Shown in pieces: positions 728-60,073 of a stretch of DNA of 64,000 nucleotides (position 1 is its first letter; every line of letters begins with the position of its first letter). A program made the translations under genes and the position numbers. The notes under the pieces are model-generated. The model saw only the letters and a list, made by a program, of their open reading frames with translations, searched no databases and was not told where the DNA came from. The stretch lies in the NCBI RefSeq assembly GCF_035084215.1, contig NC_090340.1, positions 2,728,001 through 2,792,000 on the forward strand, read 5' to 3'. The stretch comes from Heptranchias perlo. Lineage: Eukaryota.

Positions 728-1033
728 CTATGGGATAGGTGACAATGTGAGTGGCCGTGGCTGGAATTTGGAATGTAACGTGAGACACCAGGCAGGTATA
801 AACAGTCCCGGTTGGAACAGGCGTATCATCCAAACGGCTGGAAGCTTCATATAGTCCATCGGTGATGAGTTGTATAACGTTACTTATCTCTGTTGTAGTT
901 TTGGTGCCATCTTTATACCAAGTGAAGGTGATATTCTCCGGGTAAAACGGAGATGTCGCGCACACAACTGTAAGAGACGCAGATGAATCCTTTTCATGTT
1001 CTTGAGAGGTAATTTTCAGCGGAGTTGGCGGAA
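728..1033 (-). CDS. Gene A exon 3: Ig C1-set domain
   Basis: Acceptor CTTTTCTAG|, donor AG|GTAAGAT; 306 nt; [31 protein letters not shown] is the C1 signature. Confidence 0.93.
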
Positions 1034-1957
1034 CTAGAAAAGTTGAGGAAAGCAACGTTACTCGGGCATCAGTCAAGGTCATCAACAGTCGCTTTGTTTC
1101 GTCCTAATCCGGACAGCACGATGAGGGGAGCTATTCACTCTGCGCTATCGGTAGCGACATCGTAAACGGCATTTTCGTAAACGTGCACTTTATTTCGGAG
1201 TAATTTTAACTTTTATCCCCGGGCGATAAACGGGTGACGGCTGATGGGAAAGAAAATCACCAGGGTGTAAATCGGACGGCCGATTCACTATCGCCTGTTT
1301 TGCGGTACCGCTGCCGATCAATTCCACCCCTTTAAGTATAGCAACTGATGATAAAGTACAATTTTCCCAAACGCGAGGGACTTTGACACAAAGTTTCTGG
1401 ATAATATCTTATTTACTGGAGACTAAAAAGATGATGAAAATATGGGGTACGTGGCTCAAGTTACTGAGTGTGGACTTTAACTGTTAGTCACACCCGGCTT
1501 TCAACGCTCTTAACATATAGACCATTAAATTACAAATGGGTGAATCTGAATTCCAATTGAAACAGTCAGCCCTCCGAACCAGTGCACACAAAATCAACCA
1601 TCAAACAGGATCACATTTTGCTTACGGTGGCAGAAAGCGTTCGTATCCAATACAATAAAACAAACACAAGTCTTTAACGGATATTGTAATTTTAACTTCA
1701 CATACTTTTTGCATACACGCTGACTGTGTATTTTTGGGGTAAAATTACTAAAAGACAATGCTCTTGTTGATTAATATTGCTGAAATATTGTAATACCCAT
1801 TAGCATGTAACGTGTATCAGCCTACAATGCAATTTGAATTTATTCGTATAAAACGATTGGAATTTAAGTTATAATGTGAATCCTTCAAAGCACACCCGAG
1901 AAATGATTCGAATATTACAGTCACAGAGATCGCATTCGTCGCTATTTTCATACTTAC

Positions 1958-2278
1958 CCCATACTGTTAAATGTGATCCCGTTCCGTTTCCAGCTATTCT
2001 CCCTTGATGGGCGACAGTGCAATAATACAATCCCGAGTCCTTTACAGTCACATTGATTAACCGTAGGAAGCCGCTGAATTTAGTTTTGAAGCCAGCTACT
2101 TTTCTGTCATCAGGTCCTGTGCTGAGATATTTATTATCACCCTGTTTCCACCAATGTACGTTCACACGTGGGCCGTCTTGAAAGAAGGGAATCGAGCAAT
2201 GAAAGGAGACGCTTGTACCCAAGATTGCGCTCGCGTTTCCCGGGAGTTGAGTCACTTTGACCGAAGTATCGCCGGAGT
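1958..2278 (-). CDS. Gene A exon 2: Ig V domain, germline VJ-joined type
   Basis: Acceptor TTTTCCGATAG|, donor G|GTAAGTA; 321 nt, phase 1-1; VTQ..FHC..HWWK..DSGLYYC..GNGTGSHLTV (B-Cys, C-Trp, DxGxYYC, J-like GxG). Confidence 0.93.
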
Positions 2279-2450
2279 CTATCGGAAAAGAAAATTAAAA
2301 ATGAATTAGTGAGATTGTATTACAGGAGAAAAAGCGGGAGGTTAAGGGAGTCAGGCAAAGCGTCCAAACGACAGTGATACATTTTATGTGAAAGTAAAGT
2401 ATTTACTTGCGCGTTTTAGCTATAACGCGGGTTGTAGAAGAAACAGGTAC

Positions 2451-2505
2451 CTATGGAAATGATTCCCAGAACAGAGATGCAATGAAGTACAACGCTCCCC
2501 AACAT
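2451..2505 (-). CDS. Gene A exon 1: signal peptide (MLGSVVLHCISVLGIISI)
   Basis: ATG plus 18 hydrophobic codons, then phase-1 donor ATAG|GTACC; joins the V exon in frame (I-D-SGDTSVKVTQ); conserved in the duplicate at 60019-60073. Confidence 0.8.
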
Positions 2506-3889
2506 TCTGAGCCAATTAATCACTCGGAGCGACAGACCGTGAACTGGCTGATGGTTTGTAAGAACACTGAGGGGCCGGAGTATGAAATACGTCACAATGA
2601 AGCATGATACTGTCAATGGATTCAGAAAATGCCCTTTTTTGTCTGTTTGGTGAGTTTTGCTGAAACAATTGTATATTCGCCAGAAGAGGGCGCAGCTCGG
2701 AATTTGAAGTTTGTGCAGCTGGACGGGCCCAGCCACGGGACCTTCCAACCGAAGGAAAACTGTGAAGAAAATATCATGCATTCCTTCGAGAATTCGAGAT
2801 TACAGTGCACTGTGCCTGGTATTTCCACGGGTGACGGGAGACCAGCGGAATCCCAGTGAAGACTGGCATCCTGGTGTAGAATTTCCTTTGAATGTATTCG
2901 CGGAACCCGCTAAACCTGTACTGCGGGGAATAAAACAGGGCGGGGACCGGACGTCCTGAAACACTGGTCCTTGTGCGTCACTGTGTTTATCGCTGGAAGG
3001 GGAGGCGATCACAATAATTACCGGCACTCCTATTGGCGGAGGTAAGGAAATGGCGGTTGTTACAGGATGACATCACCCATCCCAAATCCGTCATTGATGC
3101 CCGGATTGCCCCGTCTGACGCTGGAGTCGATACCTGCAGCAGGGCATCGAGGTGGAAGTAACTTTTTAAAGGACGACTTTGGTTCTATAAGAACTGCCAA
3201 GAAGTTGGCAATTTATGAATTGCAGCCAACCTGCAATCTATCTCTGTATGGTCTTTGGCGCAGACGGAACATCTTTTCCTTCAATCGTACACAAGCTTCA
3301 CTATGGGCTTCCCAATGGGGGTTGTTCTCTACAGTATCTTAACCGGAATGGAATAAGAGCGGGGAGTGAATGCTTCATTAGGCATCACAGGCGGAGGATC
3401 AGGCCAATCCTCCGTCCAAGAAATCACTCGAGAGATATATCTGGTGAGGCTTCATTGACTAAAGAATCTCTGGATGAGAAGCCAGACTTGAAAGCAGCTT
3501 CCACCTCTGGCACATCACTTAGTCTCGGCGGGGTCATTATCCACGGGACCAGGACAGTTGGCTCCACCACCCAGGTTGACATGATGTTCTTCCCCCAAAA
3601 AGATCAGTTACCTCGACAGGAGAAGCTCCCAATCCCTCAATGTACAGATTGTGTCTGACAACATGCACAGGATCCTACGTTTCAATGTAAGATTTGCTAG
3701 AAGTTGTCACGATGATTCATCCATTAAAATTCGACTGTCCCTGACCTCCTCTGGGAGTAAAATTACGTCAACGGATGGTTTGTAGATGACAAAACCTACC
3801 TCCTGTTCTAATTGAAAACGATCCCATGAAGCGTGGCTTGAACAACAGCAGAGGAGCGCTACAATGAGACACTTACCACTACAGGATTT

Positions 3890-4098
3890 ATGTAAACAGT
3901 TTTACAACAGCAAGTTATAGTCCAACAATTTTATTTGAAATTCACAAGCTTTCGGAATGTTGTAGAACATTCACCTGAGGAAGGAGGAAGCCTCCGAAAG
4001 CTTGTGAATTTCAAATAAAATTGTTGGACTATAACTTGGTGTTGTAAAATTGTTTACAATTGTCAACCCCAGTCCATCACTGGCATCTCCACATCATG
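3890..4098 (+). mobile_element. Penelope-like element terminal fragment with inverted segment
   Basis: ~66-bp inverted arms at 3891-3956 and 3993-4058; 12-bp TSD ACTACAGGATTT at 3878-3889 and 4099-4110; hammerhead motif inside. Confidence 0.8.
3969..4009 (+). ncRNA. Minimal type-I hammerhead ribozyme
   Basis: ATTCAC-CTGAGGA-A-GGAGG(AAG)CCTCC-GAAA-GC-TT-GTGAAT: 6-bp stem I, both core boxes, 5-bp stem II, palindromic AGCT stem III. Confidence 0.8.
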
Positions 4099-19445: not shown

Positions 19446-20164
19446 TTGGGAACGATTAAAGCCAGTACTGGGAATGATAAGGATATGTTGATTTTGCTCA
19501 GCGGCCCCTCGTGCACATGAACATAAACATAAACATTTAGCAACAATCGAAATGCACAAAATACGGGGTAATCGTATAAGGCACAGATATGAAACATGCT
19601 CAGTTTTGGATCACATTCTTTTTACACATCGAGCATTTTCGAAAATGTACGAGAGAAACGCACCCGTTCTTCGAATTGTTGAGATCCCTCTTCGTCTCTG
19701 CGTGCGCCTAATGAAATACAACATTTAATTTTGACCATGAATCAGGAAGTGAACCACTGAGAGCAGGCAAATCCGAATTAGTCTCAGCCAATAACGTCTC
19801 AAGGATTACAGGTCATGAAAAGTTTTGAAAATTTCATCGCAACTCCTCCCCTTCGTTGGACAATTTTGAATTAAAGTTCCGGAAATGCATTCGGCCCATA
19901 ACACAGGGAATTACTGAATTGTAACTAGGAAACACCACCGAAAAATGAAAATATCGGTCTCGTTAATCATTTATTTTAAGTTAATTTGAATGCCTCTTGT
20001 ACAAATCATCTATTTCATATCATGGAACCAGTTAAAGCGGTTCAACATATCAACAGAATTCGATTCCTGTTGCAGCTTTAACGCGCCTTCCTCTGCCCGG
20101 CGTCATATTGTTCCCTTTTTTATTACAAATGTATTACAATGAAACTGCAGATTTGGCTCCTTAC

Positions 20165-20278
20165 CTTTACAGTTACTGAGTTGGTAACTCTTCCCAATGA
20201 CGGTGACGAGGGCTAGAAATATCAGTGCACCCCCTGTACATCCAGAAATCAGTAGGTAATGGGGGATGTGTTCATTGT
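20165..20278 (-). CDS. Gene B exon 4: transmembrane exon (DNEHIPHYLLISGCTGGALIFLALVTVIGKSYQLSNCK)
   Basis: Acceptor TTATTGTAG|, donor AAAG|GTAAGG; 114 nt, phase 1-1; ~22-aa uncharged hydrophobic segment; absent from the ORF track. Confidence 0.85.
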
Positions 20279-20849
20279 CTACAATAATAATAAAAATAAT
20301 AATGTGTTAGTTGCATGATGTATATATTCAGTGCCTCCACGGCAGAGCATGAGGACTGAGACTGTTAACTTGGGCAAGCTGCTTTACTTCTATGTATAAA
20401 ACAGAGTTGTATTGATTATTGTTTTCCCTTCAGCTGAATCCGGCATGTAAATTGTCTGCATTACAGGGGCAAAATGTAATTTTTCGATTTTCGTTGACAC
20501 GACAATGGTGAACTTTGAAGCTAAGAAGACTGTGGCGCAAATTGCAGCCGCATTATTCATCCTTGGGTGATGCCTCACGGAGAGCGCTGACACAGGGACT
20601 GACCTCGATCGGCAGGGTATTAATAAAGGGAAATGCGTAAATTAATTAGAAAAAGGCATTCCATGTATTTTGTCTCTATTAAATAACGAGGAATTGAATC
20701 GGATGAAGATTAGTTTAATTCAGTTTATCATTATAATCTCTACCGATTACACTCCATTCCTCTGATGGGAGACGTTTAACTTATTTATGCGTTTTACAAA
20801 TCTGCAAATAGAAACAACCTTTAAATGAAAACTCATTAAATTAATTGTA

Positions 20850-21895
20850 TTTTTTTATTCGTTCATGGGATGTGGGCGTCGCTGGCAAGGCCAACATTTA
20901 TTGCCCATCCCTAATTGCCCTTGAGAAGATGGTGATGATTCGCCTTCTTGAACCGCTGCAGTCCGTGTGGTGAATGTTCTCCCACAGTGCTTTAGGTAGG
21001 GAGTTCCAGTATTTTAACCCAGCCACGATGAAGGAACGGCGATATATTCCCAAGTCAGGATGGTGTGTGACTTGGAAGGGAACGTGCAGGTGGTGTTGTT
21101 CCCATGCGCCTGCTGCCCTTGTCCTTTTAGGTGGTAGAGGTCGCGGGCTTGGGAGATGCTGTCGAAGAAGCCTTGGCGAGTTGCTGCAGTGCGGTGGTTG
21201 GTACACACTGCAGCCACGGTGCAACGGTGGTGAAGGGAGTGAATGTTTAGGGTAGTGGATGGGGTGCCATTTAAGCGGGCTGCTTTGTCCTGGATGGTGT
21301 CGAGCTTCTTTAGTGTTGTTTGAGCTACACTCATCCAGGCAAGTGGAGAGTATTCCATCACACTCCTGACTTGTGCCTTGTAGATGGTGGAAAGGCTTTG
21401 GGGAGTCAAGAGGTGAGTTATTCGCTGCAGAATACCCAGCCTCTGACCTGCTTTTGTAGCCATAGAATTTATGTGGCTGGTCCAGTTAAGTTTCTAGTCA
21501 ACGGTGACCCCCAGGATGCTGATGGTGCGGGATTCAGCGATGGTAATGCCTTTGAATGTCAAGGGAAGGTGGTTAAACTCTATCTTTTTGGAGATGGCGA
21601 TTGCCTGACACTTGTCTGGCGCGAATGTTACTTGCCACTTATCAGCCCAAGCCTGGATGTTGTCCAGGTCTTGCTGCATGCCGGCACGGAATGCTTCATT
21701 ATCTGAGGGATTGCGAATGGAACGGAACACTGTGCAATCGTCAGCGAACATCCCCATTTCTGACCTTATGATGGAGGGAAGGTCATTGATGAAGCAGCTG
21801 AAGATGGTTGGGCCTAGGACACTGCCCTGAGGAACTCCTGCAGCAATGTCTTGGGGCTGAGATGATTGGCATCCAACAACCACTATCATCTTCCT
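20850..21895 (-). mobile_element. Second LINE family (CR1/L2-group RT), 5'-truncated, in the gene B C1-TM intron
   Basis: AGVPQGSVLGP, MFADD, YKAQVRSVMEYSP; tail GGCAATAAATG..CACATCCCATGAACGAATAAAAAA. Confidence 0.9.
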
Positions 21896-21987
21896 TGCAT
21901 GTCAGAAACACAAATGATTGAGAGTAAATAAAGCAGATTTAAATTGAATTATGGCTGCCAATATCTGTAAAAATATTAGCATCTTAC

Positions 21988-22296
21988 CTGGGTTAGATGA
22001 GGAATCAAAGTAAACAGCCACGGCTGGACTCTGCAGTGTGGGGTGAGACACCACACAGGTATACACAACTCCGCTCTGGGCTGGCTCTGTCGCTTTCAAA
22101 ATGCTGGAAGCTTCATACATTCCCTCAAAATTCAGCTTTTTAATGGTGGTGATTCCAATCACAATGTTGGTGTCATTTTTATACCAAATGAAGGTGAGAG
22201 ACTCCGGGTAGAACTCAGCCGTTGCACACACAAGAGTCAGAGCAGATGAGTTGGTTCCGGACACTTTGCGGGACAGTCTCATGGGTTTTGGGGAAG
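21988..22296 (-). CDS. Gene B exon 3: Ig C1-set domain
   Basis: Acceptor TTGTTCCACAG|, donor CAG|GTAAGA; 309 nt; LVCATAEFYPESLTFIWYK..YEASS..YTCVVSH. Confidence 0.93.
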
Positions 22297-23454
22297 CTGT
22301 GGAACAAGACAGAAAATACACTGATTGTCTGGACTCTGCTGATTTAGTCAGGTTTGGCGCTCAGTCTTCTTGAATATAACGGCGTGACTCTCGGTCACAG
22401 GTGCAGAGATAACCACTGACAGGAAATTTCCTGGGTCAGCAAGGTCGCCATTTGCTTGTTGGATGATAAGATGATTCCAATTCACACTTTGATTACTGAA
22501 CAATTCGAAGTAAGATTCTTCCCATAACTTTCTAGACTAAAATGCAAATGATTCACAACCGCCAACCGCGTTGCAGTAACAGGAGAATGTATTTCAGTGC
22601 TAGTAGACATTGAGGCCGTCGCTGCATTGTGCTTAGTCACAGAAAGAATAAGGTTTAGATTTCAATTCAGCCGCTTTTTGCTCTGTTTTATTATTGGGCA
22701 AGCTTTTGTAAATAGGCAAAACTTATTCAGGTAATATCAATTTAAACTCTTCGCGTTAAGAATTGCAAATTTGGAACAAAGCGGCAACATTATTACCGCC
22801 CAGACAATTGTTACTTTGATCACGGGATTATTGTCGGGGCAGGAAAAATCATTTCACCCAAAATTGTAAAGAGGAAAAAAAAACAACTTGCTGGAAATCT
22901 GGATTTGAAGAATTGGCTAGAAGTGAGATTTGAGAGGATCAACCAAGGAGCTGATTGAGGAAAGTGGCTGAAAGTCCAGTCACATAGCAAGGCTAACATC
23001 AGGCTGGAAATATATTATCACTGTAACGAGAACTGCACCCCCACCCCCCGACGTTCGTATTTGTTAAAGTTACAATTTAAATCGGGAGTCACAGTCTGAT
23101 CTCAGTCCACCGAGCAGTGCGTGAGGTCCCTCGGCGAAGTCGGATGCTCACTGATTGGTTTCGGCACTCATGCTGTGTAACTCCGGGCTAGTATCAAATT
23201 TAATTTTCAAAACTGATCACAGGTTCCCTTGGATCACACTGTAAACTTACCTGGAGTTAGTTCAAATGTGCATAGATTATAGGCCCTCCATCTCTGCTCT
23301 CTAAACATTTAACCATGTATGTACAGGGCAGGGGAATTGTACATCACACCTTGCAGTATTTTGATTCATTATTGTTAGTTACAGCTCAGTCTTGTAGTCA
23401 GTGATAAGACGCCGACGGATTTTACATGCAGATCAGTTTGTGTAATTGGACTAT

Positions 23455-24120
23455 TATAAATCTTTAAATGTAGCAGGACGAATATACGGTATCCTTGGCT
23501 TTATAAATAGAGTCACAGAGTACAAAAGCAAGGAAGTTACGCTGAACATTTATAAATCATTAATTATGCCTCAGCTGGAATATTGCGTCCAATTTTGGGC
23601 ATCACACTTTACGAAGGATTTCAAGGCCTTGGAGAGGGCGCAGAGAAGATTTACCAGAATTATACCAGGCATGAGGGAATTCAGTTTTATGGAGAGATTG
23701 GAGAAGCTGAGTTTTCCTTGGAGCAGAGAAGGTTAAGGGGAGATTTAATTGATATGTGCAAAATGATGAGAGGTTTTGCTAGAGTAAATAAGGAGCAACT
23801 GTTTCCTCTGACAGGAGGGTCGGTAAACAAAGCACATAGATTGAAGATAATTGGCAAAAGAACTAAAGCAAACAAGTGGAGATTTCTTTTTCAGAGCGAG
23901 TTGCTATGATCTGGAATGCCCTGACTGAACCTGTGTTGGAAGCAGATCAAATAGTAACTTTCAAAAGGGAACTGGATATAGACATGAAAGGAAAATTTTG
24001 CAGGGCTATGGGAGAAGTTCTGAGGAGTGTGATTAATGGGATAGCACTTTCAAACAGCCGGCACATGCACGATGGGCGGAAGGGCCGTTTTGTCTGCTGC
24101 AAGATTCTATGATTCTATGA
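23455..24120 (+). mobile_element. CR1 3' fragment in the gene B V-C1 intron
   Basis: QLEYCVQFW, RRLRGDLI; ATTCTATG tail. Confidence 0.88.
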
Positions 24121-25035
24121 AATTAGAGGCAGGTGCTTTCGTTGTGACAAGAGTTTTTAAACACACAGGAACACGTACATTAAATAGGAAGGATCCGAAA
24201 ATATTCTTCAGTCCAGTTGTCTATTCCCTAAATTCTAATACCTCTGAATCGTGTACTCCATCAAATTTCGATCCAATTCTCCCGTAAAATGTTCCACAAT
24301 ATCTACGGTCACCAGACAGTCCGTTTCACATATTCACCACCTTCTGTGTAAAGTAATTAAATCTAAAGTCAACCTTTCCTTTGAAAAGTTACAACCATTG
24401 ACCACTGGTTGCCGTCTTTGTGGCAATTTAGAGCTAACTACCTATTCTCAAAATAATCTTGAATACTTGAATAAAATGTCCAATGCGCCTTCTGTGCTAC
24501 AACGTAAACAAGCCCAGGCTCCTCAACGGTTGGTGATATAATTGTACACCGTATTCAAGGAGTGGCCGTACCAGTATCTTATACAAACTAATTTGTTCTC
24601 TTTCCTTGTAGACAGTCACCCAAGGTCATGTCTTGCTACCGCTTACCGCGATTTTGGCTTCAGATCCATCTATAGTGTCCTGGAGCCCAGAGATAATTAA
24701 CCAAAAATAATAAAACATCATAATGTGTGATAATCGCGGTACGGCCTTAGGGCTGATTTTAAATAATGTTCCCTGATCAACTTACAAAACTAACACCATG
24801 GATAAATTCGCTAAATGATTAAAAAAACTGATGATACGATATACTTAATGCAAGATACTCAAAGCACTTCAATTATACCTGGTCTGTAAATATCCAAACA
24901 TAAAAGTACCAGGGATTCGACTATTAGAAATGTTTGAAAAAGAAGCCTCGTAACGTGGCCCTCCGCCTCCTTTCGTTATTTTGCAATGACCGTGGTGTAA
25001 TAGCAAAGGCCCCATCTCTCTGCAAGGCCGCTTAC

Positions 25036-25347
25036 CGTGCACAACGAGCGTCGATCCATTTCCATTTACCATTGCGTATCCTGCGTATCTCACTCCGCAG
25101 TAATAGAATCCGGAGTCGGGGACACGCACACTCAGGATCTGGAAAGAAGCCTCTCCGTTTTTCAAATGAAAGAAACGTTTTCTGCCGTCAGAACCTGGTT
25201 TTAAGAAGTTATTGTCGCCAAGTTTCCACCAATAAACAGTCACATCTGAATTATCCTGGTCAGAGCTCGTCAGGCATTGGAAAGTAATGTCTGCACCTGC
25301 CATCACACTGGTGCTTTCAGGGGTTTGGAAAACTTCAGCGGGAGCAA
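25036..25347 (-). CDS. Gene B exon 2: VJ-type Ig V domain
   Basis: Acceptor GTTTTATAG|, donor CG|GTAAGC; 312 nt; VFQTP..FQC..YWWK..DSGFYYC..NGNGSTLVVH. Confidence 0.93.
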
Positions 25348-25399
25348 CTATAAAACAGTCAAAAACATTAATTACAAAATAGGGATAAAAGATAGTTAT

Positions 25400-25515
25400 G
25401 CATGGATAGATCGATTGATCGCTAGATAAATAGATAGATGGATAAATCGATAGGGATAGATAAATGTATAGATGGAAGAAAAAAAGAAAGTAAGAAAGAC
25501 AGAAAGAAGATAAGA
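25400..25515. repeat. Degenerate (GATA)n/(GAAA)n microsatellite in gene B intron 1
   Basis: Direct reading. Confidence 0.8.
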
Positions 25516-25539
25516 ATGGTCAAGTGTAACGGAGAATAC

Positions 25540-25585
25540 CTTTGTAAATAATCCCCAGGACCCAGATGTACTGACACACAAACAT
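25540..25585 (-). CDS. Gene B exon 1: signal peptide (MFVCQYIWVLGIIYK)
   Basis: ATG plus 15 codons, then phase-1 donor AAAG|GTATT; shares VLGII with the gene A leader; in frame with the V exon. Confidence 0.78.
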
Positions 25586-25745
25586 TGTACAATGGATATT
25601 GTTCAGCCAATGAACCGCGGCTCTGACGGTAAACTATTTTAAGAGGCGAGATGTGAATGCAAAAGTTATTTAATGTACAAGAGCACCTCACCTGATCAGG
25701 AACTGTAATCTGAAGTTAAACCAACGCCCCACTGCTCGAACTTTA

Positions 25746-40481: not shown

Positions 40482-40639
40482 TTACTTGGCTTTCCGTTCC
40501 GCGTAATTAACGTCGGATCTTTGCTTTTTCATCCGTAGCTGAGCGTACTCCGTGCTCTTTTCATTATATTTAGGCTTTGCTGTCTTCTTGGAGCCAGTCA
40601 AGCATAGGTCAGCTTGTTCTCGGGTGTCCTTTGCTTGGT
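40482..40639 (-). pseudogene. Frameshifted terminal cytoplasmic exon (TKQRTPENKLTYA* / LTGSKKTAKPKYNEKSTEYAQL...)
   Basis: Acceptor CCTTGATTTCACAG|; internal similarity to the preceding exon; TGA at 40598-40600, with TEYAQL in the shifted frame. Confidence 0.65.
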
Positions 40640-40840
40640 CTGTGAAATCAAGGGTTGGGCATCTCATTAGTTCGATAATTTACCTGTATGTAGGTTAGTG
40701 TTAATCATTAGAATAGCCGGAATCTCGCAGAATCAGCGTTAAATAGAACAGATTACCAAAGATCTATTAAGGCTATTCCTTGCTCTATCCAGCATGTCCG
40801 CAGGTAATCTGTGTCTCTTTGTACTGCTCCTCAGACCGAC

Positions 40841-40939
40841 CTGGGCATACACTGTCCTCTCTTGATGCTTTGGTCTTAGAGCTTTCCGCGAATTGGTTAT
40901 GTCTAGTGCAGCATAAGGCGCCATCACATCGTCCGATAT
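40841..40939 (-). pseudogene. Cytoplasmic tyrosine-motif exon (ISDDVMAPYAALDITNSRKALRPKHQERTVYAQ), probably of gene C
   Basis: Acceptor TTCATTCCATGCAG|, donor CAG|GTCGGT; 99 nt, phase 0-0; YAAL and TVYAQ motifs. Confidence 0.7.
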
Positions 40940-41717
40940 CTGCATGGAATGAAAGGCAAAAATATATCTTGTTATGTTATAGGTCAGATGCCGCTTTTAG
41001 GAGCTCCCTTTGCAGAACAATGCGAGCGGACACGAAAATCACGGGTCCAGAGTCCATGCATTAAATGAATGGAGGGAAATTCAGTCCCAGCCACACTCAA
41101 CTTCCCGGCTGGCGCTCCACGCCAGCGACGTCAGTGCCCAACAGGCGGAACCAGTCCTAATAACACAAATAGTCAAACAGCCTTGGAGAGGGTGAAGGGA
41201 GGTTTTCGTCTTTACCGTCTGGACTTTACGCATCGACAGGACTAAGCGTAGAAAAGAAAATGTAGCGGAGCCGATGCTGGCAAGGGAACCCGAAACATTT
41301 CCCTACCATTGAAATTAATGCAAAAAAATCTATCTCACCAGATTTCCCTTCCTGCGCTACGCCCAAGCGATGCTTAGGCAGGAAAAACGAAGATTTACCC
41401 CCAAAATTCCGCGGAATTACCGCTTGTCTCCCGCCCTCATTTTGCTGGGTGAACACCAGGGGCTCGAATTTAGCAGGCCTGCGGGTTCCCAGCGGGTGGT
41501 CCTCCGGGAGCGTCGAAAACGCGAACGGCGAAATTAGTGGGTTGCCCACGCGATCGCGGGATAATTGGACCCATTAAGCCCTGCTTCCGGGTTCTGCGCT
41601 CCCCAGCTGCGAGCCGGCCGGCTGCGCATGCGCAGTACCGTCGACGCGATGTAGGAGCTCCAGTTAAAGGGGCAGTCTCCCAAAGCCCCTCCTGCTGCAA
41701 GCAAGAGGTCTGGGAGA

Positions 41718-43489
41718 ATGGCTCAACAAAGGGGAAAGGCTGCGCCCCGTTTTTCAGATCTGGCACTGCAGCTGATGCTGGAGGGCGTGAGGAGGAGGAG
41801 GGAAACACTCTTCCCAGAAGATGGGCGCAAGTTCCCTGCCGCCGCAACCAGGAAGGCATGGGCAGAGGTGGCGGCGGAGGTGAGCAGCAGGGGCAACACC
41901 CCAAGGACTTGGGAGCAGTGCCGCAAGCGCTTCAATGACCTGACTAGGTCTGGCAAGGTGAGTACACCAACGCACCCTCCCACATCCCGTCCCCACCATC
42001 ACGCCAAGCAGATCACAACCCCCTCCTGCACAGCAACCACTGCGCTCCATCAGCAATCCTCACAGCCACTCATTCACCATCCTCGCCGTGCACGCAAGTA
42101 CCCACCGTCCCTGACCCCACCCGAACACTACCACACACCCCAATCCCCATGCAATGGGATGGCCATGTGGCCCACGCTTCCCCCCATCAGTTCCGCGCCA
42201 CGCTCAACCCAACCACACCGATGCTCGATGCGTCTCACGATGCAAGACGCACCCACTCACACATCTGTGTTTTGCCTTCACAGGAGAAGAGAAGCAAGAA
42301 AAATAGGGAAAGGGCACGCACCGGAGGTGGGCCGCCGCAAGTGGTGGAGCTGACCGACGCAGAGGTGGAGGCGCTCGACCTCGCCCGCACGCAACATTGC
42401 CTGTCGGTGGCCGATGGCGAGTGTGTCGCTGCCGAAACGGCCGGTCACCTGCCATCAGGCGCACTGTCAAGTTGGTCCACATGCTTCAAAGTGCCCTCTG
42501 TTCTCTTGCAGGTCCGTCTTTGGGTCAAGCGAGCGTGGAGGGCGATTCCTCAGAGGACATGGCGGTCTCTGAGGGTGCATTGTCACATCAGAGCCAACCA
42601 TCCACCAGCGCAGAGACACGCACCTCGGTGGGTCCCCCTCGCCATCTAGTTGGGGTAGCACTTGGTGAGTCACTGCGCACGAGTGAGCATGAGCAGACCC
42701 TGGTGGCAGGGGCAGCCGCGGAGGGTCCGCGATGGAGGGAGCACTCATCTCCAGGCTCTGCTCAGCCGGACCCAGATGCTGAACCCAGGGGGCCACCAGT
42801 GAAAAGGAGAGTCGTCGAGGGCCACCAGCTAATTGCTGAGGTACTGGCAGAGGTGCCGCGCGCATTGTCCACAATAGCGCAGGCGATGGAGGAGTCCACC
42901 TCCTGCATGTGGGCATTGGTGGCGCAGGCACAGGAGGGTACCGGCGACACAGTGTCGCGGGTAGGTGCGGGACTGTCTGCGGTGGAGGACAGGCTGGCCT
43001 CCCTCGAGCGTCACGCACAGCTCCACTTCGAGTCCTTGCAGGCCCTGACAACGTCTGTACGGATTCAGGGTGAGCAACATTCCGACGCCACCAACAGGCT
43101 GAGGGATACACTAGGGGTGGCCTTGCAAGGCCTCACACATGCCATGCAAACTGCCGTCCAGCAGGGTGGAAGGGGTGATGTGGGCCGAGGCCAAGAGAGG
43201 GATGATGGTGACCGGGGACATGGAAGCCCCCACGTCCCACCCGTCGCCCACCTCTCAACCAGTACCCGCAATGGTGCCTCCTCTCCAGGTGGCCGAGTCT
43301 GCCCCTGCCCCGGTGCAGGAGGAGCAGTCTGTGGAGGTGCCCTCACGGGCACCGAAACCCAGGGGCCGTCCGCCAAAAGCATCTACCCGGTCAAGGCAAG
43401 AAGACGAGCAACCTGCCACTACCTCTGCTGGAGCCACAGGGGTAGCACCACGTAGGGGTTCCCGGAGAAGAATTGCAAAGGCCTTATAA
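41718..43489 (+). CDS. Harbinger Myb/SANT-like DNA-binding protein (exons ~41718-41957, 42284-42443, 42512-43489; probable frameshift near 43225)
   Basis: APRFS..AWAEVA..RTWEQCRKRFNDL trihelix; donor AAG|GTGAGT; exon 2 EKRSKKNRERARTGGGPP; basic C-terminus PRRGSRRRIAKAL in a different frame. Confidence 0.82.
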
Positions 43490-43714
43490 TCACAAAGGGA
43501 ATACACCAGGGTGTTTATTATTTTGTACTTTGTTTCTTAAATGATGTCACATTCCAGATATTAAATAGTCTCTTCTCACCACTCCTGCCACCTCTCGTCC
43601 ATTCTTCCGCGGCTTGTGCAATAGTTGCGTTCCGTGGAGGCCATCATGACGGCGAACACCTGCTGCCACCCATTGGGCACACTGCTGTGGGTGCAGGATT
43701 ACTGGCAGCACTCT

Positions 43715-45043
43715 TCAGTGGAGGGGGCTGGTATGGCCGCTCGCATGTGCAGGTGAGGAGATGCGAGCGCCTCGCAGTGTCTGACTCTCGGAGAACCGTT
43801 GACGTATGAGTGCGTCCCTGGCCTGGCGACCATCCCGGTGAGTCGCGGCTCGGCGCATGGGTCGTCCAACATCCTCTGGCGCGTCCTCCTCCACCGCCTC
43901 CTCCTCCTCCGCCTCCTCCTCCTCCTCCTCCTCCTCGCCCTCGCCTTCCTCAATGTGGGTGGCGGGTGAGGATGGGGCCTCCTCCAGCGGCACCCCTCTC
44001 TGTTGGGCCATGTTGTGCAGGGCACAGCAGACAACTATGATTCGTCCCACTCTGAATGGTGTGTATTGGAGCGCTCCCCCAGAACGATCAAGGCACCTGA
44101 AGCGCATCTTGAGAAGCCCTATGGTCTGCTCAATTGTAGACCTGGTAGCAGTGTGGCTGTCATTGTACCGACGCTCCGGCTCGGTGATGGGGTTCCTCAG
44201 AGGTGTCATGAGCCACGTGTGGAGGGGATACCCCTTGTCGCCGAGGAGCCAGCCGTTGCCGGCGTTGGGTGCCTGCAGGATGGGCGGGACGGCGGACTCC
44301 CTGAGGATGAAGGCATCGTGGCAGCTGCCGGGGTATCTGGCGCACACGTGTAGGAATCTCTGGCGGTGGTCACAGATGAGCTGGGCGTTCATGGAGTGAT
44401 ACCCCTTCCTGTTGATGAACAGCCCTGGCTCATGCGGAGGTGCCCGTATTGCGATGTGGGTGCAGTCGATTACACCCTGCACCCGTGGGAAGCCGGCCAT
44501 GGCATGGAATCCAACCGCCCTCTCCATCTGGCTGCGCTCGTCCATGGCGAAGTTGATGTAGTGGGAGGCCCTGCGGAACAACCCATCGGTGACCTGCCTT
44601 ATGCACTTGTGTGCAGAGGACTGACAGACCCCGGTGATGTCCCCGGTGGCACCCTGGAAGGAACCGGATGCGAAGAAGTTGAGGGCAGTGGTGACTTTGA
44701 CGGCGACAGGTAAGAAGATGCTGCTTGGTCCATCACGGAGCAGCTCGTCGTTAAGGAGGCTGCAGATGTCGGCGACTACCTGGCGATTGACTCTGAGCCT
44801 CCGTATGCACTGCTCCTCGGAGAGGTCCATGAAGCTGAGCCTCGCTCTGTACACCCTGTGCGGAGGGTAGTGCCTCCTGCGACGCATCTCTCTCTGCGGT
44901 TGCCCTCCCTCCTGCTGTGCAGGTGGGTGTGCCGCAGCACCGTGTTGGGGGGCCCCACCTCTCCGAGGCGGACGGCGTGGACTGCGAGGCTGCTGGGGCT
45001 GGTCATCCTGTTCGTCCTCCAACGATGTCAACGCACCACCCAT
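43715..45043 (-). CDS. Harbinger DDE transposase (HARBI1-family nuclease)
   Basis: Open frame from MGGAL; motifs GVIDCTH, NRKGYHSMN, GSCHD, LLGDKGYP, TIEQTIGLLKMRF; acidic poly-E C-terminal tract. Confidence 0.92.
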   Translation of the reverse strand: MGGALTSLEDEQDDQPQQPRSPRRPPRRGGAPQHGAAAHPPAQQEGGQPQREMRRRRHYPPHRVYRARLSFMDLSEEQCIRRLRVNRQVVADICSLLNDELLRDGPSSIFLPVAVKVTTALNFFASGSFQGATGDITGVCQSSAHKCIRQVTDGLFRRASHYINFAMDERSQMERAVGFHAMAGFPRVQGVIDCTHIAIRAPPHEPGLFINRKGYHSMNAQLICDHRQRFLHVCARYPGSCHDAFILRESAVPPILQAPNAGNGWLLGDKGYPLHTWLMTPLRNPITEPERRYNDSHTATRSTIEQTIGLLKMRFRCLDRSGGALQYTPFRVGRIIVVCCALHNMAQQRGVPLEEAPSSPATHIEEGEGEEEEEEEEAEEEEAVEEDAPEDVGRPMRRAATHRDGRQARDALIRQRFSESQTLRGARISSPAHASGHTSPLH

Positions 45044-46244
45044 CTGGCAGGTGTTGGTGTGAGGGGTTGTGCAGGTTAGGTGGGTGGGTCCTCGGACTGG
45101 GGATGCGGTTTCGTGTCGGTCTGTCCTCTGGCTTGGCGGGGGTTGGTGGAGGGCAGGGGTTGCCCTATGTGACGCGGTGGCCTCCTGCGTGGGTGAGGGC
45201 TCTCCCCCGTGGAGCGCACCTTGGCACCTGCCACAGGCTGCTGGCTGCAACACGTCTGGTTTGAAAGGTACTGTTTCCCCCAGTGTGGGAGACTGACTGC
45301 GTTGAACCTAAAATCCCACACTTCCTCTTTTGACAGCTGCTTCAGCTCATTAACTGACCACAACGAGCAAGTTAAGTGCTCTCAAGTGGAACCCCGCTGG
45401 CTTTAATTGCCTGCGGGATTCCCACCAGCGGGGCTTGCGCGCGCAGGCCCGCACGTCAGCGCGGTACCCGGAAGTGGCCGGGATTTCGTCCGAATCCGGT
45501 CACGTGACCGGAGATCGGGATTTTCGGGCCCCCCCCCCCCCCCCCGCTGGAAACCCGCAGGTAACCCGACCGTAAAATCGAGCCCCAGAAGTCCAGGAGA
45601 AAGCGTGTAATAAGCTGAAAATTTTAATTCCGTTCTCTGGCAGTTCCATGGATATCCCGCCGAAGTGACGGAAATTTCTACGTTATAAAAATAAACAAAA
45701 ATAAGGGATCAAAGTTCATTCCTATAGCCATTTGATATGAATAGTCTGGTTGAAATTTCGTTGCAGCAAAAACTAGCAAAACTATTTAGATCGTTCATGA
45801 AATTGAGCTTTATACTGCAGTGGAAAATGTGTTTAATTATTATACAAAGAATATTATTTAATTAGCACAGGGGGACTTAAATAGGGCTTCAGGGCAATTT
45901 TCAGTAGTCAGGTCACTTTCAATATCTAAACAAATAAACAGCGAACATAATTCTGGAATCAATAATCAGAACATGGAATTCAGGAGGTTACATTAAAGCT
46001 TCAAAGTGAACTTCTGGACTACACTTAGAATCCTACTTTCGGATTTCAATTCATCCACAATGCCACATGCCTACATGTATGTCTATATTTACTATATTTA
46101 TATCTATTGATATATATATCTATTTATATATGTATATTTATGTATTTTTCTCTCTATATCTACAATAATACTTCTCTTTCTCTGTAAGGTCGACCCCGAT
46201 CACTCAAAGACGGAGATGAAGTAGGACCAGGGAATCAAATGAAG

Positions 46245-51534: not shown

Positions 51535-52140
51535 AGAACGATAGACTCATAGAAAATGTGCAGCACAGAAGGAGGCCATTCGGCCCATCGTGTCCGCACA
51601 GGCCGGAAATGAGCCACCCGGCTTAATCCCACTTTCCAGCACTTGGTCCGTAGCCTTGTAGGTCACTGCACTTCAGATGCACTTCCAGGTTCTTTTTAAA
51701 TGAGTTGAGGGTTTCTGCCTCTACTCTCAGGCAGTGAGGTCCAGACCCCTACCAACCTCTATGTTAAAAAATGTTTTCCACAGTTCCCCTCTAATCCTTG
51801 TACCAATCACTTTAACTCAATGCCCCCTGGTTATTAATCTCTCTGATAAAGGAAATAGGTCATTTCTATCCATTCTATCTAGGCCCCTCATAATTTTGTA
51901 CACCTCAATTAAATCACCCATCAGCCTTCTCTGTTCCTAAGAGAAAAACCTCACCTATCCAATCTTTCCTCATAGCTAACATTCTTCAGTCCTGGCAAAA
52001 TCCTCGTAAATCTCCTCTGTACCCTCTCCAGTGCAATGACATCAAGCTGTGTCCTAACCAGTGTTTTATACAGTTCCAGCATAACTTCCCTGCTCTTATA
52101 TTCTATGCCTTGGCTAATAAAGGAAAGTATTACATATGCC
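51535..52140 (-). mobile_element. CR1 3' fragment
   Basis: CATAGAA tail; similar to 53725-54110 and 16035-16347. Confidence 0.8.
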
Positions 52141-52159
52141 TACCACACCCCCCCCCCCG

Positions 52160-53090
52160 ACCCCACCCGCAGCATGAGTGAACCTCCCTGCGAGGACATT
52201 GGTCCCAGCTCCGTTGAGGTGCAACCCATCCAGCCTGTACAGGTCCCACCTCCCCCAGAAGCGGTCCCAATGCCCCAGGAATCTAAAGCCCACCCTCCTG
52301 CACCAGCTCTCCAGCCACACATTCATCTGCTGTATCCTCCTATTTCTATACTCACTACCACATGGCACCCGGAGTAATCCAGTGATTACTACCTTTGAGG
52401 TCTTACTTCTTACCGTCTTTCCTATCTCCTTAAAATCTTCCTGCATGACCTCATCCCCCTTTCTACCTATGTCGTTGGTACCGAATTGGATCGCGACCTC
52501 TGGTTGTTCACACTGCCCATCCAGAATGTTCTGCAGCCGCTCAGTGACATCCTTGACCCTAGCACCAGGGAAGCAAAATACTATCCTGGAATCATGTCTG
52601 CGGCCGCAGAAACGACTGTCTGCTCCCCTAACTATAGAATCCACTATCACTATTGCTCTCCTGACCTTTCTACCCACCCGCCCCCCCCCCCCCCCCCCCC
52701 CCACACACATACTTTACAGCTGGGCCGCCCTTGGTGTTGTGGACTTGGCTCTGTCTGTATTCCGTAGAGGAATCCTCTCCCTCACCGTTATTCAGAACTA
52801 CTTGCCTGGTCCTTGTCTGTCTGGCGGTCACCTAATCCCTCTCTGACTCCACTCTCTTAAGCTGTGGGTGACCACCTCCTGAAACGTGCTATCCACGTAG
52901 CTCTCAGCCTCACGGATGCACAGTAGTGATGGCAGCCACTGCTCAAGCTCCGAAACTCGGAGCTCGAGATCCTCCAGTTGACGACACTTCCTGCACATGT
53001 GGCCATTCAGGACATGGGAAGCGTCCTGGAGTTCCCACAAGGCTCCGGATATGCATTCGACGGGTCTGAGCTGCCCTGCCATGCCGCGAC
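52160..53090 (-). mobile_element. CR1 ORF1 remnant (Cys-rich zinc finger / leucine zipper plus SGNH esterase)
   Basis: HMCRKC..LELRVSELE; IVIVDSIVR, FPGARV, GTNDIG, DGLHLN. Confidence 0.85.
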
Positions 53091-56011: not shown

Positions 56012-57100
56012 CAATCATGGGAATCAGGGGGAAAACTCTCCAGTGGCTGCAGTCATACCCAGCAAAAAGAAAGATGGCAGTGGTTGTTGGAGGCCAATTG
56101 TCTCAGCCACAAGACATTGCTGCAGGAGCTCCTCAGGGCAGTGTCCGAGGCCCAATCGTCCTCAGCTGCTTCATCAATACCTTCCCTCCATCATAAGGTC
56201 AGAAATGGGGATGTTCGCTGATGATTGCACAGTGTTCAGTTGCATTCGCAACCCCTCAGATAATGAAGCAGTCCGTGCCCGCATGCAGCAAGACCTGGAC
56301 AACATCCAGGCTTGGGCTGATAAGTGGCAAGTAACATTCGCGCCAGACAAGGGCCAGGCAATGACTAACTCCAACAAGAGAGAGTCTAACTACCTCCACT
56401 TGACATTCAACGGCATGACCCTCACCGAATCCATCACCATTAACATTCTGGGGGTCGACCAGAGAATTAACTTGTCCAGCCACACAAATGCTGTAGCTAC
56501 AAGAGCAGGTCGGAGGCTGGATATTCTGCGGCGATTAACTCACCTCCTTACTGCCCAAAGCTTTTCCACCATCTCAAGGCACAAGTCAGGAGTGTGATGG
56601 AATACTCTCCACTTGCCTGGATGAGTGCAGCTCCAACAACATTCAAGAAGCTCGACACCATCCAGGACAAAGCAGCCTACTTGATTGGCAGCCCGTCTAC
56701 CACCCTAAACATTCACTCCCTTCACCACCGATGCACCGTAGCTGCAGTGTGTACCATCTGTAGGATGCACTGCAGCAACTCGCCAAGGCTTTTTCGACAG
56801 CACCTCCCAAACCCATGACCTCTACCACCTAGAAGGACAAGGGCAGCAGGCACATGGGAACAACACCACCTGCACGTTCCCCTCCAAGTCACACACCATC
56901 ACGACTTGGAAATATATCGCCGTTCCTTCATCGTCAGGGTCAAAATCCTGGAACTCCCTTCCTAACAGCACTGTGGGAGAACCTTCACCAGCGGTTCAAG
57001 AAAGCAACTCACCACCACCTTCTCAAGGGCAATTAGGGATGGGCAATAAATACCGGCCTTGTCACCGACGCCCACATCCCAAAAAGGAATAAGAAAAAAA
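56012..57100 (+). mobile_element. Second LINE family 3' fragment
   Basis: MFADD, MEYSPLAWM; same 3' tail. Confidence 0.9.
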
Positions 57101-58273
57101 TCTTCCTACCTGTCGCTGTCAAAGTCATCACTGCCCTCCCGAACTTCTGCTCCACAGCCTTCCAGGCTGCAACCAGGGACATCCCCGATGTCTCTCAGTC
57201 GTCTGCGCAGAAGAGCCCTGCAAATACACCGACACCCACTCTGCAGTGACACACTGGGTGGAATCAGTGGTGGGTCCTCATAGGGATACCCAGGAGCGGG
57301 CATTATTCCACAAACCGGACAGGATTCGCGAAGACATGGCAGTATTGGTGCCAATATAATGTGTGATGTGAGTTGTTCTTTAAGTCAATAGATGTAAGAA
57401 CCATGACAAACCCTCGAACACCCTTGTGCATCCCCTTCATGCTCACGACACGTTTGTCTTACGCTGCCGACTGCACATATGTGATGCATGCCCTGTGGCT
57501 GCAGCACAGGTGGTGGCAGGTTGAGTGAGGCTCGCCATGAGAGAGATGCACGAGAGGGTGAGTATGGGATAGAGCCATGAGATTGTATGAGGATTGGGTT
57601 GCGTGGTCGTGGCGGGGTGAGTACTCGCGAGGTGAGTAGGTGCAGGTAAGATGAGGATGAGGTTTGAGTGGGTATGAGGGGTGATGTGACAGAGTAGTGT
57701 TGGCAGTGCTGAAGGAGATGTGGGATGGGGGCAGTGTTGTGGCAGACGGAGTGTAGGGGAATGAGTAAGTGTTCTCATTGTGGCTGACCTCCTGAGGTCA
57801 TTGGAGCGCCTCCTGCACTCTGTGCAGGTGGGCGATATGTTGGTGGTGCTGGTGACCTCCTCTGCCACCTCGAGCCAGGCCTTCTTGGTGGCAGAGGCAG
57901 GCCGCTTCCTCCCGCCCGTCGGGTGGAAGATCTCTGTCCTCCCCCTCCTCCTCACCACATCTAATGGTACCTGGGGTGAGGCATCATTAAACTGGGAACA
58001 GCCTTCCCCCTGGGCTGCTCCATGCTGTAATTTTTGCTGTTTTTGGCAGCATCTGTCAGTGGAGGACTGCCTCTTGAAAAAGAGCGCCTCCAGCTGACAG
58101 ATCTTACTGCGCATGCGCAGCCCGCCCGACGCGCAGTTCAGCATCGGGGAACCCGGAGGAGCAGGTAAGTGGTTCCAATTCCTGTGTTGCCTGCTACGAT
58201 CGCGCGGGAAACCCTATAAACGCGCCCGCTGGCCCACCCGCCCAGCACCCGCACCCCTGGTAAAATCGGGCCC
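57100..58273 (-). mobile_element. Truncated Harbinger (one TIR and Myb exon)
   Basis: TIR TAAAATCGGGCCC ending at 58273; ATKKAWLEVAEEVTS..CRRRSNDLRRS. Confidence 0.85.
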
Positions 58274-58313
58274 ACGGTTCTATTTGCAGGATAACTGAGA
58301 TCTGCTATCTTAC

Positions 58314-60073
58314 CTATAGGGGAGGTGACAATGTAAGTGGCCGTGGCTGGAATTTGGAATACACCGTGAGACACCAGGCAGGTATAAACAGTCCCGGTTC
58401 GAACTGGCGGCGAATCATCCAAACGGCTCGAAGCTTCATATAGTCCATCGGTGTTGAGTTGTATAACGTTACTTATCTCTGTTTTAGTTTTGGTCCCATC
58501 TTTATACCAAGTAAAGATGATATTCTCCGGGTAAAACGGAGATGTCGTGCACAAAATAGTCAGAGACGCAGATGAATCCTTTTCATGTTCCTGAGAGGTA
58601 ATTTTCAGTGGAGTTGGCGGAACTAGAAAAATTGAGGAAAGCAACGTTACTCGGGCATTAGTCAAGGTCATCAACAGTCGCTTTGTTTCGTCCTAATCCG
58701 GACAGCACGATGAGGGGAGCTATTCACTCTGCGCTGTCGGTAGCGACATCGTAAACGGCATCTTCGTAAATGTATTTATTTCGGAGTAATTTTAACTTTT
58801 ATCGCCGGGCGATAAACGGGTGACGGCTGATGGAAAGAAAATCGAGCGGGATGTAAATCGGGCGGCCGATTCACTATCGCCTGTTTTGCGGTACCGCTGC
58901 CGACCAATTCCACCCCTTTAAGTATAGCAACTGATGATAAAGTACAATTTTCCCAAACGCGAGGGACTTTGACACACAGTTTCTGGATAATATTTTATTT
59001 ACTGGCGGCTCAAAAGATAATGAAAATATGGGGTGCGTGGCACAAGTTACAGAGTGCGGACTTTAACTGCTGGTCACACCCGGCATATAGACCTGTAAAT
59101 TATAAATGTGCGAATCGGAATTCCAATAGAAACGGCCAGCCCTCCAGAACCTATACAGACAAAATAAACCATCAAACAGGACCAGATTTTGCTTAGTTTG
59201 GCAGATCCGCGTTAGTATCCAATGCTATCGAGATATACATATCCTTGACAGATACTGCAATTTTAACTTCACATGTTTATTGTATACACGCTATCGTTGT
59301 ATTTTTGAGTAAAATTACTAACAGATAATGTTCTTGTTGATTAATATTGCTGAAATATTATAATATCCATTAGCATGTAACGTGTAGCAGCCTACGATGC
59401 AATTTGACTTTATACATACAAAACGATTGGAATTTAAGTTGCAATGTGAATCCTTCAAAGCACAACCGAGAAATGATTCAAATATTACAGTCACAGAGAT
59501 CGCATTCGTCGTTATTTTCATACTTACCCCAGACAGTTAAGTGGGATCCCGTTCCGTTTCCAGCTATTCTCCCTTGATGGGCGAAGTGCAATTATACAAT
59601 CCCGAGTCCTTTACAGTCACATTGATTAGACGAAGGAAGCCGCTGAATTTAGTTTTGAAGCCAGTTACTTGTCTGTCATCAGGTCCTGTGCTGAGTTATT
59701 TATTATCACCCTGTTTCCACCAGTGTACGTTCACACGTGGGCCGTCTTGAAAGAAGGGAATCGAGCAATGAAAGTAGACGCTTGTACCTAAGATTGCGCT
59801 CGCGCTTCCAGGGAGTTGAGTCACTTTGACCGAAGTATCGCCGGAGCCTATCGGAAAAGAAAATCAAAAACGAATTAGTGAGATTGTGTTACAGGAGAAA
59901 AGCGCGAGGGTAAGGGAATCAGGCAAAGAGTCTAAGTGACAGTGGTACATTTTATGTGAAATTAAAGTATTTACTTGCGCGTTTTATCTATAACGCGGGT
60001 TATAGAAACCACAGGTACCTATGGAAATTATTCCCAGAATAGAGATGCACTGAAGTACAACGCTCGCCAACAT
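58314..60073 (-). pseudogene. Gene C: pseudogene paralog of gene A (leader 60019-60073, V 59528-59847, C1 58314-58622)
   Basis: Colinear high-identity copy of 689-2853; V exon has TAT->TAA at 59696-59698, YYC->YNC and a 1-bp deletion (320 vs 321 nt); C1 exon still open. Confidence 0.9.

Follow-up and report, generated by a model that had tools for sequence, protein, structure and literature searches.

We analysed 64,000 nucleotides (nt) of the genome of the shark Heptranchias perlo (contig NC_090340.1, positions 2,728,001 to 2,792,000; this whole stretch is referred to below as the window), in which three genes, designated here A, B and C, carry exons for a variable domain with a joining-like end (VJ) followed by exons for a C1-set immunoglobulin (Ig) domain. 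The window probably holds part of a tandem cluster of germline-joined receptor genes that belong to a chondrichthyan-wide family homologous to SIRP. By its sequences, the family resembles a set of paired receptors of the SIRP kind in which members have a single C1 domain. SIRPs themselves have for many years been named as VJ-C1 relatives of antigen receptors that do not rearrange. A sequence-only reading of the same DNA had placed the cluster between positions 728 and 60073, and both limits were confirmed: position 728 is the final base of the gene A C1 exon and the ATG of gene C starts at 60073.

The exon maps were read directly from the window sequence; all exons lie on the minus strand and have AG/GT borders. 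By direct reading and tblastn, exactly three V-type and three C1-type exons are present in the window, all on the minus strand. The junctions of the leader, V, C1 and transmembrane (TM) exons are all of phase 1, and the leader introns of the three genes are ~170-190 nt long, which is the split-leader layout. In the V exons, the reading frame is continuous from the YYC motif through a J-like strand into the splice donor. A scan for recombination signal sequences (RSS) gave no heptamer or nonamer within or next to the V exons and, across the whole window, no composite of heptamer, spacer and nonamer. Thus, the genes are germline-joined and not rearranging; direct reading and the empty RSS scan uphold what the sequence-only reading had said of the V exons, namely that they run via YYC and a J-like GxG strand into a donor with no RSS.

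Alignment of 16 family V domains showed that the strand-C Trp, the strand-F D-x-G-x-Y-x-C motif and two J-strand glycines are invariant or nearly so. The J-like strand has the consensus GNGTGSxLTV, i.e., G-x-G-S-x-L-x-V. The family C1 consensus, FYPE..TWYK and YTCxVSH, agrees with the C1-set motifs FYP..W and YxCxVxH. All sequence searches were run with individual exons or with proteins from databases. In Pfam searches, the V exons of genes A and B matched the V-set (E 4.7e-9 and 1.3e-10, respectively) and their C1 exons matched the C1-set PF07654 (E 8e-13 and 1.4e-10, respectively). AlphaFold (AF2) models were built exon by exon with family alignments, and structural neighbours were retrieved by Foldseek. 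The gene A V model (mean predicted local distance difference test score, pLDDT, 89.7) was nearest to shark IgNAR V, T-cell receptor (TCR) V-alpha and V-beta and the lambda light-chain variable domain (VL), with NCAM Ig1, SIRP-alpha V and CD79b further down the list. Its C'-C'' region is short, as in IgNAR V, and its identity to the solved V domains of Ig, IgNAR and TCR is 21-27 %. The gene A C1 model (pLDDT 89.2) was nearest to MHC II beta2 and light-chain constant domains. As modelled, the gene A exons are predicted to encode an antigen-receptor-like V domain and a C1-set domain.

Relation of the family to SIRP

A phmmer search with the gene A V exon against 1.84 billion representative sequences retrieved 111 matches at E <= 1e-10. 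All 22 named proteins of the V-C1 type come from sharks, rays, skates or chimaeras (including Callorhinchus), as had been supposed when a lineage-expanded chondrichthyan family was proposed from the window alone, and the same germline-joined structure is kept in chimaera, rays and sharks. Family members within one species share one chromosome-size contig. The expected automatic annotation as SIRP-like or Ig light chain-like was encountered (tyrosine-protein phosphatase non-receptor type substrate 1-like, which denotes SIRP-alpha, and immunoglobulin lambda-1 light chain-like), together with other names: tapasin-related, NCR3 ligand 1-like, class II histocompatibility antigen beta-like and uncharacterized. 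No paper describing this SIRP-like family was found in the searchable literature. In the V-domain tree, ~75 family sequences stood apart from the V domains of bovine SIRP-beta, frog SIRP-like, reptile and coelacanth proteins (Shimodaira-Hasegawa-like approximate likelihood ratio test, SH-aLRT, 88). Gene A grouped with catshark, houndshark and batoid sequences (96), and gene B with the relatives P0001-P0003 and P0078 in a shark clade (100).

A census of the TM and tail regions that follow the C1 domain gave four groups: members with long tails bearing immunoreceptor tyrosine-based inhibitory and switch motifs (ITIM and ITSM); members with an Arg near the outer side of the TM and a short tail (P0007, P0067, P0048 and P0049; e.g., LLISRCAWGG vs LLISGCTGG); members whose TM is uncharged and whose short tail lacks motifs, which is the gene B type and is kept in the orthologues of gene B; and models without a TM. 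A membrane-edge Cys (ISGC) is conserved. In three proteins, P0013, P0085 and P0131, the VJ domain leads straight into a TM and an ITIM tail without C1, an NKp30-like V-TM layout; either loss of the C1 exon or exon skipping within the family would account for them. The skate model P0009 is the only member with two copies of the same C1. P0008 and P0009, whose ectodomains are 97 % identical and whose tails are of opposite kinds, were considered as a within-species pair and rejected, as they come from two skate species.

Twelve shark inhibitory members were compared with seven bovid and cervid SIRP-alpha sequences by hhalign, which gave a probability of 99.6 % and E 1.4e-23 over 334 columns. The shark V aligned with SIRP-alpha d1, the single C1 with d3 (d2 being skipped) and the TM with the TM, and the four tail tyrosines, Y1-Y4, paired one to one with those of SIRP-alpha. 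The paired tail segments are xVYAxLDL...KK with ITYADLNL..KGKK, RTVYAQT with HTEYASI, KLTYAALDL with TLTYADLDM, and NTEYAEIQ with YSEYASVQ. In Smith-Waterman alignments of the SIRP-alpha tail with eight shark tails, scores lay 4.2-11.6 z units above those of shuffled sequences, with z of at least 8 for six tails; no shuffle reached the observed score for seven tails, and 4 of 500 did so for the eighth, P0107. A hidden Markov model (HMM) made from the shark tails alone scored 33-41 bits on SIRP-alpha over nearly the whole length and found no match on the reptile ITIM-bearing multi-V receptors present in the same set. When the tail region was used in a word-indexed protein search, all matches were chondrichthyan, a result that is uninformative on remote relatives.

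From the whole-length and tail comparisons, we conclude that the family is, as far as sequence comparison can tell, homologous to SIRPs; orthology is not claimed. Of the kinship with SIRP and NKp30 that had been suggested from the window sequence, the SIRP part is thereby borne out. The sequence-only reading had contrasted its receptors with already characterised families, true SIRP orthologues among them, and the full-length homology moves the family towards such a characterised kind.

Family members share with SIRPs a non-rearranging V with a J-like G strand on one germline exon, a C1-set domain that matches SIRP d3 best, a TM and an inhibitory tail. Collinearity of the four tyrosines with SIRP-alpha holds for inhibitory family members; in the window, such a tail survives only as the broken exons at 40939..40482. 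The shark family further includes proteins in which a short tail accompanies a basic TM residue, and others in which the TM is neutral. The shark family differs in having many deep lineages and large tandem expansions, and its V is no more similar to SIRP V than to IgNAR, TCR or VL.

Several observations weigh against kinship with SIRP or against the activity of the genes studied here. SIRPs are V-C1-C1 proteins, whereas the shark genes have one C1, leaving d2 without a counterpart. The activating forms of the shark family use a TM Arg and not the Lys of SIRP-beta. The single bovine SIRP V domain falls outside the family in the V tree. A family profile of contiguous V-C scored 72-73 bits on Ig light chains, 68.4 on SIRP-alpha d1-d2 (with a further 48.0 on d3) and 58.9 on UrIg2, i.e., slightly better on light chains than on SIRP-alpha d1-d2. 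As these scores are close, the ectodomain alone nests in none of the three groups, and, given the slight preference for light chains, the case for homology to SIRP depends for the most part on the tail and on collinearity across the whole protein. The tail, in turn, could in principle be constrained by the spacing of tandem SH2 domains. Finally, the contig that covers gene B exons (see below) matches the residues of P0001 and not those of gene B, and so does not speak for expression of the window genes themselves.

The alternative that survives best, though we regard it as unlikely, is an independent chondrichthyan VJ-C1 lineage nearer to the antigen-receptor and UrIg stock, in which the SIRP-alpha-like tail would be convergent or exon-shuffled. 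UrIg and UrIg2 are published non-rearranging elasmobranch VJ-C1 genes (PMC12227049; PMC10751288), and the bare idea of a non-rearranging shark VJ-C1 gene is therefore not new. UrIg is secreted and has 3 C domains, nurse shark UrIg2 has 9 C domains, and orthologous UrIg or UrIg2 sequences are 50-80 % identical between species (PMC12227049). Like these genes, the family has a single germline VJ exon and a split leader followed by C1-type coding sequence, and occurs in elasmobranchs. Among solved structures, UrIg2 (PDB 9dmx) was the best match of the window C1 exons (60 bits for gene A C1), followed by Ig constant domains, CD276, SIRP-alpha and SIRP-gamma d3 and MHC II beta; searches of PDB with the V exons, by single sequence or by profile, returned chiefly I-set proteins with several domains, from which no family could be assigned. 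An independent origin would also fit the V model, whose nearest folds are IgNAR and TCR V, the lead of light chains over SIRP-alpha d1-d2 in the V-C profile (72-73 bits vs 68), the position of bovine SIRP V outside the family clade, and the duplication of genes A and C, which ends right past the C1 exon, so that heads may be joined to different tails. It is, however, the whole protein and not just the tail that is collinear with SIRP-alpha, and the tail-only HMM finds SIRP-alpha and not the other ITIM receptors in the set. The identity to UrIg2 is ~30 % per domain, which carries no orthology signal, and the family differs from UrIg and UrIg2 in having one C1 together with ITIM or Arg-TM parts; it falls outside that group.

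A bolder proposal, which we consider improbable, is that the family is the surviving VJ-C1-TM stock that existed before RAG, ancestral both to tetrapod SIRPs (after duplication of C1) and to the rearranging chains, and that its members form TCR-like dimers through the J-strand bulge, the C1 faces and the ISGC Cys. By the comparisons above, V-C appears about equally like Ig light chains, SIRP-alpha and UrIg2, and a special closeness to the antigen-receptor ancestor is not demonstrated. Homology to SIRP is the reading that we retain in what follows.

Genes A, B and C

Gene A consists of the following exons in the window:

2505..2451, minus strand: leader exon, MLGSVVLHCISVLGIISI, 55 nt, with a phase-1 donor, followed by a 172-nt leader intron
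2278..1958, minus strand: VJ exon, 321 nt, phase 1-1, intact; ends YYCTVAHQGRIAGNGTGSHLTVW, donor GTAAGT
1033..728, minus strand: C1 exon, 306 nt, phase 1-1, intact

The VJ exon encodes YYC, a short CDR3-like loop and the J-like strand GTGSHLTV, and has the family invariants W42, D80, C86, G98 and G100. What the window contains of gene A is an intact head for the ectodomain; the TM and the tail are encoded beyond it, and with the TM exon outside, the signalling type of gene A is not readable from the window.

Gene B was read as far as a cytoplasmic exon:

25585..25540, minus strand: leader exon, MFVCQYIWVLGIIYK, with 100 % identity to that of P0001 from Heptranchias perlo
25347..25036, minus strand: VJ exon, 312 nt, phase 1-1, intact; ends YYCGVRYAGYAMVNGNGSTLVVH, donor GTAAGC
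22296..21988, minus strand: C1 exon, 309 nt, phase 1-1, intact
20278..20165, minus strand: connecting-peptide/TM exon, 114 nt, phase 1-1; DNEHIPHYLLISGCTGGALIFLALVTVIGKSYQLSNCK
19707..19664, minus strand: cytoplasmic exon, GARRDEEGSQQFEER, without a tyrosine motif; matches the P0001 tail GARRKEEESQHFEER

The J-like strand of gene B is GNGSTLVV. The V exon is 78 % identical to the V of P0001, a 286-amino-acid protein, and also matches relatives in Heterodontus and Scyliorhinus. The TM exon, which the sequence-only reading had ascribed to gene B, was recovered by tblastn with P0001 (E 2e-17) and is nearly identical to the TM exon of P0001; its membrane span has no charged residue. Gene B is an intact, conserved member with a neutral TM and a short tail. 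The V domains of genes A and B are only 38 % identical, and the two genes therefore represent two old lineages, 20 kb apart.

Splicing was checked with contigs of four runs compared against window positions 19650-25640; no run on record as RNA contains this stretch. In a 913-nt contig of run X1, letters 179-490 fall on 25347..25036 and letters 491-800 on 22296..21987, the 2.7-kb V-C1 intron of gene B being removed exactly at the predicted borders. The same contig extends over the TM exon (with differences at 20204 and 20225), and a short contig from a second study stops at the same C1 border. The X1 contig differs from the window at ~10 % of positions; of the listed differences that change an amino acid, 12 of 12 in C1 and 8 of 9 in V convert the window residue to that of P0001. 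The contig thus derives from the mRNA of a Heptranchias-type homologue and not from gene B, its source being either an orthologue in another species or a paralogue. In none of the four runs did a contig of at least 99 % identity cover gene B exons; the runs contain mainly transposon sequence, and the sole exon-covering contig is that of the ~90 % identical homologue. The predicted V-C1 splice pattern is accordingly verified for the family, via this homologue. Spliced transcripts, on which the sequence-only reading had made its proposal depend, were in this way found with the exact V-C1 junction, in a relative and not for the window's own gene.

Two further features of these contigs concern the introns of gene B. 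Retrotransposon fragments at 20850-21900 and 23450-24050 are covered by contigs whose depths sum to 10^4-10^5 in each of the four runs; these repeat families are abundant, and perhaps transcribed, in both organisms. Contigs of X1 and X3 join position 25508 back to 23713 with 11 other letters between, which probably reflects a repeat common to the low-complexity stretch near the leader and the element in the intron.

Duplication links gene C, a pseudogene, to gene A:

60073..60019, minus strand: gene C leader exon, with the ATG at 60073; 92.7 % identical to the gene A leader
59847..59528, minus strand: gene C V exon, inactivated; shares 94.7 % identity with its counterpart in gene A
58622..58314, minus strand: gene C C1 exon, 309 nt, frame open; shares 92.5 % identity with its counterpart in gene A and has a 3-nt insertion
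689..2854, minus strand: gene A duplicated block, from the promoter side through 39 nt beyond the C1 donor
58275..60429, minus strand: gene C duplicated block; homology stops 39 nt past the C1 donor, beside a Harbinger Myb-like remnant
40939..40841, minus strand: tail exon T1, ISDDVMAPYAALDITNSRKALRPKHQERTVYAQ, encoding ...APYAALDITNSRKALRPKHQERTVYAQ; 5' border uncertain
40639..40482, minus strand: tail exon T2, TKQRTPENKLTYA then a stop; the shifted frame still gives LTGSKKTAKPKYNEKSTEYAQL

Relative to gene A, the gene C V exon has an in-frame TAT to TAA change at 59698-59696 and a 1-nt deletion between 59585 and 59584, just past a change of YYC to YNC. These two lesions and the stop in the tail exon make gene C a pseudogene. 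Three minus-strand genes with leader, V and C1 exons in phase 1 had been reported from the sequence; their exon borders and phases stand, while gene C is disabled by the TAA and the deletion. The duplicated blocks of genes A and C are 88.5 % identical over 2188 nt (blastn), with exons at 92.5-94.7 % and introns at about 90-91 %.

T1 carries tyrosines 1 and 2 of a SIRP-alpha-type tail. In T2, an in-frame TGA at 40600-40598 lies within the LTYAxL motif, and the tyrosine-motif tail exons claimed for the cluster are thus present but truncated. Both lie ~17 kb downstream of gene C. Their best match is P0014, a Heterodontus inhibitory member (E 5e-13), the C1 domain of which is of gene A's type (68 % identical), and for this reason T1 and T2 most likely belong to gene C. 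No credible gene C TM exon was found between 41 and 58 kb, the best match being E 0.9 at 58203..58156, and tblastn with all family tails found no TM or ITIM fossil exons on the minus strand of the gene B V-C1 intron. Gene C looks like a decayed inhibitory partner of gene A; it would be a dead partial duplicate of A that had been joined to an inhibitory tail.

Transposon sequences adjoin several of these features. An open reading frame (ORF) at 57443-58144 on the minus strand resembles a Harbinger Myb-like protein, with no Pfam match at E <= 0.001, and abuts position 58275; this suggests that a transposon insertion or a transposon-mediated rearrangement marks the border of the A/C duplication at 58275. 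Between the head of gene C and the tail exons, at 41200-45300, there is a GC-rich (55.6 %) PIF/Harbinger-type transposon with both genes open: a 512-amino-acid transposase ORF (43715..45253, minus strand; DDE_Tnp_4, E 5.7e-37) and a Myb/SANT-like ORF (41718..42353, plus strand). This element may be a young or active copy.

One can ask whether all three copies in the window are decaying relics and the cluster is functionless here. We hold this to be very unlikely. Gene C has plainly lost function, transposons crowd the region, and the four runs gave no contig on gene B exons at or above 99 % identity. However, genes A and B retain open frames, canonical splice sites and every family-invariant residue, one-to-one-looking orthologues of gene B with the same neutral TM occur in three other sharks, and the exons of A and C are more alike than their introns.

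As a whole, the window is vertebrate DNA rich in repeats, free of N runs and without flanking genes from outside the receptor family. A LINE (long interspersed nuclear element) ORF2 with apurinic endonuclease and reverse transcriptase lies at 61504-63999 on the minus strand and is open for 831 amino acids, past the window end (RVT_1, E 2.8e-34). A 198-amino-acid ORF at 52114-52710, also on the minus strand, encodes a GDSL lipase/esterase domain (E 4e-13) such as occurs in ORF1 of certain LINEs of the CR1/L2 type.

Comparison with NKp30, B7 and antigen-receptor families

The sequence-only reading had joined NKp30 to SIRP as a relative of these genes, and this part of the proposal did not hold up. 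Human NKp30 structures are present in PDB. No NKp30 structure was among the 60 listed matches of any PDB sequence search or among the Foldseek matches listed. NKp30 resembles the family in its non-rearranging VJ-type domain, and the C1-less family members share its V-TM layout; it differs in consisting of a single VJ-type domain with an Arg TM and no C domain, whereas the window genes have a C1 exon. Kinship to NKp30 thus appears, from these searches, not supported.

That the genes are members of the B7/butyrophilin ligand family, with V, a C1-like domain and TM as in B7-H6, is a possibility to which we give hardly any credence. P0001 and P0043 do bear the name NCR3 ligand 1-like, B7-H6 has V followed by a C1-like domain, and CD276 is a moderate match of gene B C1 (E 8e-13), of middle rank among its matches. 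However, the matches to SIRP-alpha, Ig and UrIg2 are stronger than those to B7, no B7-H6 structure was among the listed PDB sequence or Foldseek matches, and the J-like G strand is invariant in the shark family, whereas the IgV of B7 and butyrophilin has no J-type GxG strand. In addition, receptors with ITIMs and receptors with a TM Arg fall into one family together with gene B.

Least probable of all, and already contradicted, is the view that these are germline-joined light-chain or TCR genes of the sort known in sharks, mis-read as a separate family: several relatives are named immunoglobulin lambda-1 light chain-like by NCBI, and the V(J)-C1(-TM) order, the split leader, the phase-1 exons and the G-strand GxG bulge motif are all shared with light chains, TCR and IgNAR, but the family has TM exons with ITIM tails or Arg-TM forms, i.e., signalling parts of the innate paired-receptor type, its V model has the low identity to solved Ig, IgNAR and TCR V given above, and it shows no RSS relics and no separate J, the joined structure being germline-fixed across more than one shark order and kept in chimaera and rays as well.

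Proposed signalling and significance

A mechanism for the SIRP-like family can be proposed on the basis of sequence motifs and established knowledge of paired receptors; the signalling partners, the paired-receptor function, the ligand and the cell type are what we infer by analogy. The V domain would bind a ligand which, if SIRPs are a guide, may be a marker of self or a mimic of such a marker made by a pathogen. In inhibitory members, the four tyrosines (in the order ITIM, ITSM-like, ITIM, ITSM-like), once phosphorylated, would recruit SHP-1 and SHP-2. Short-tailed members with the TM Arg would signal through an adaptor that carries an immunoreceptor tyrosine-based activation motif (ITAM) and an acidic TM residue. 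Members with a neutral TM and a short tail, gene B among them, may have no intrinsic signalling, like SIRP-gamma, or may act via a partner. The membrane-edge Cys could form a disulphide.

The automatic names now carried by members of this family are inconsistent and mostly wrong. If the homology to SIRP is true, the SIRP-type paired-receptor system would date to the base of jawed vertebrates, and comparative immunologists would have a second non-rearranging VJ-C1 lineage beside UrIg and UrIg2. With such a second lineage, V and C1 trees could be rooted, and ideas on the type of gene that the RAG transposon entered could be put to the test.

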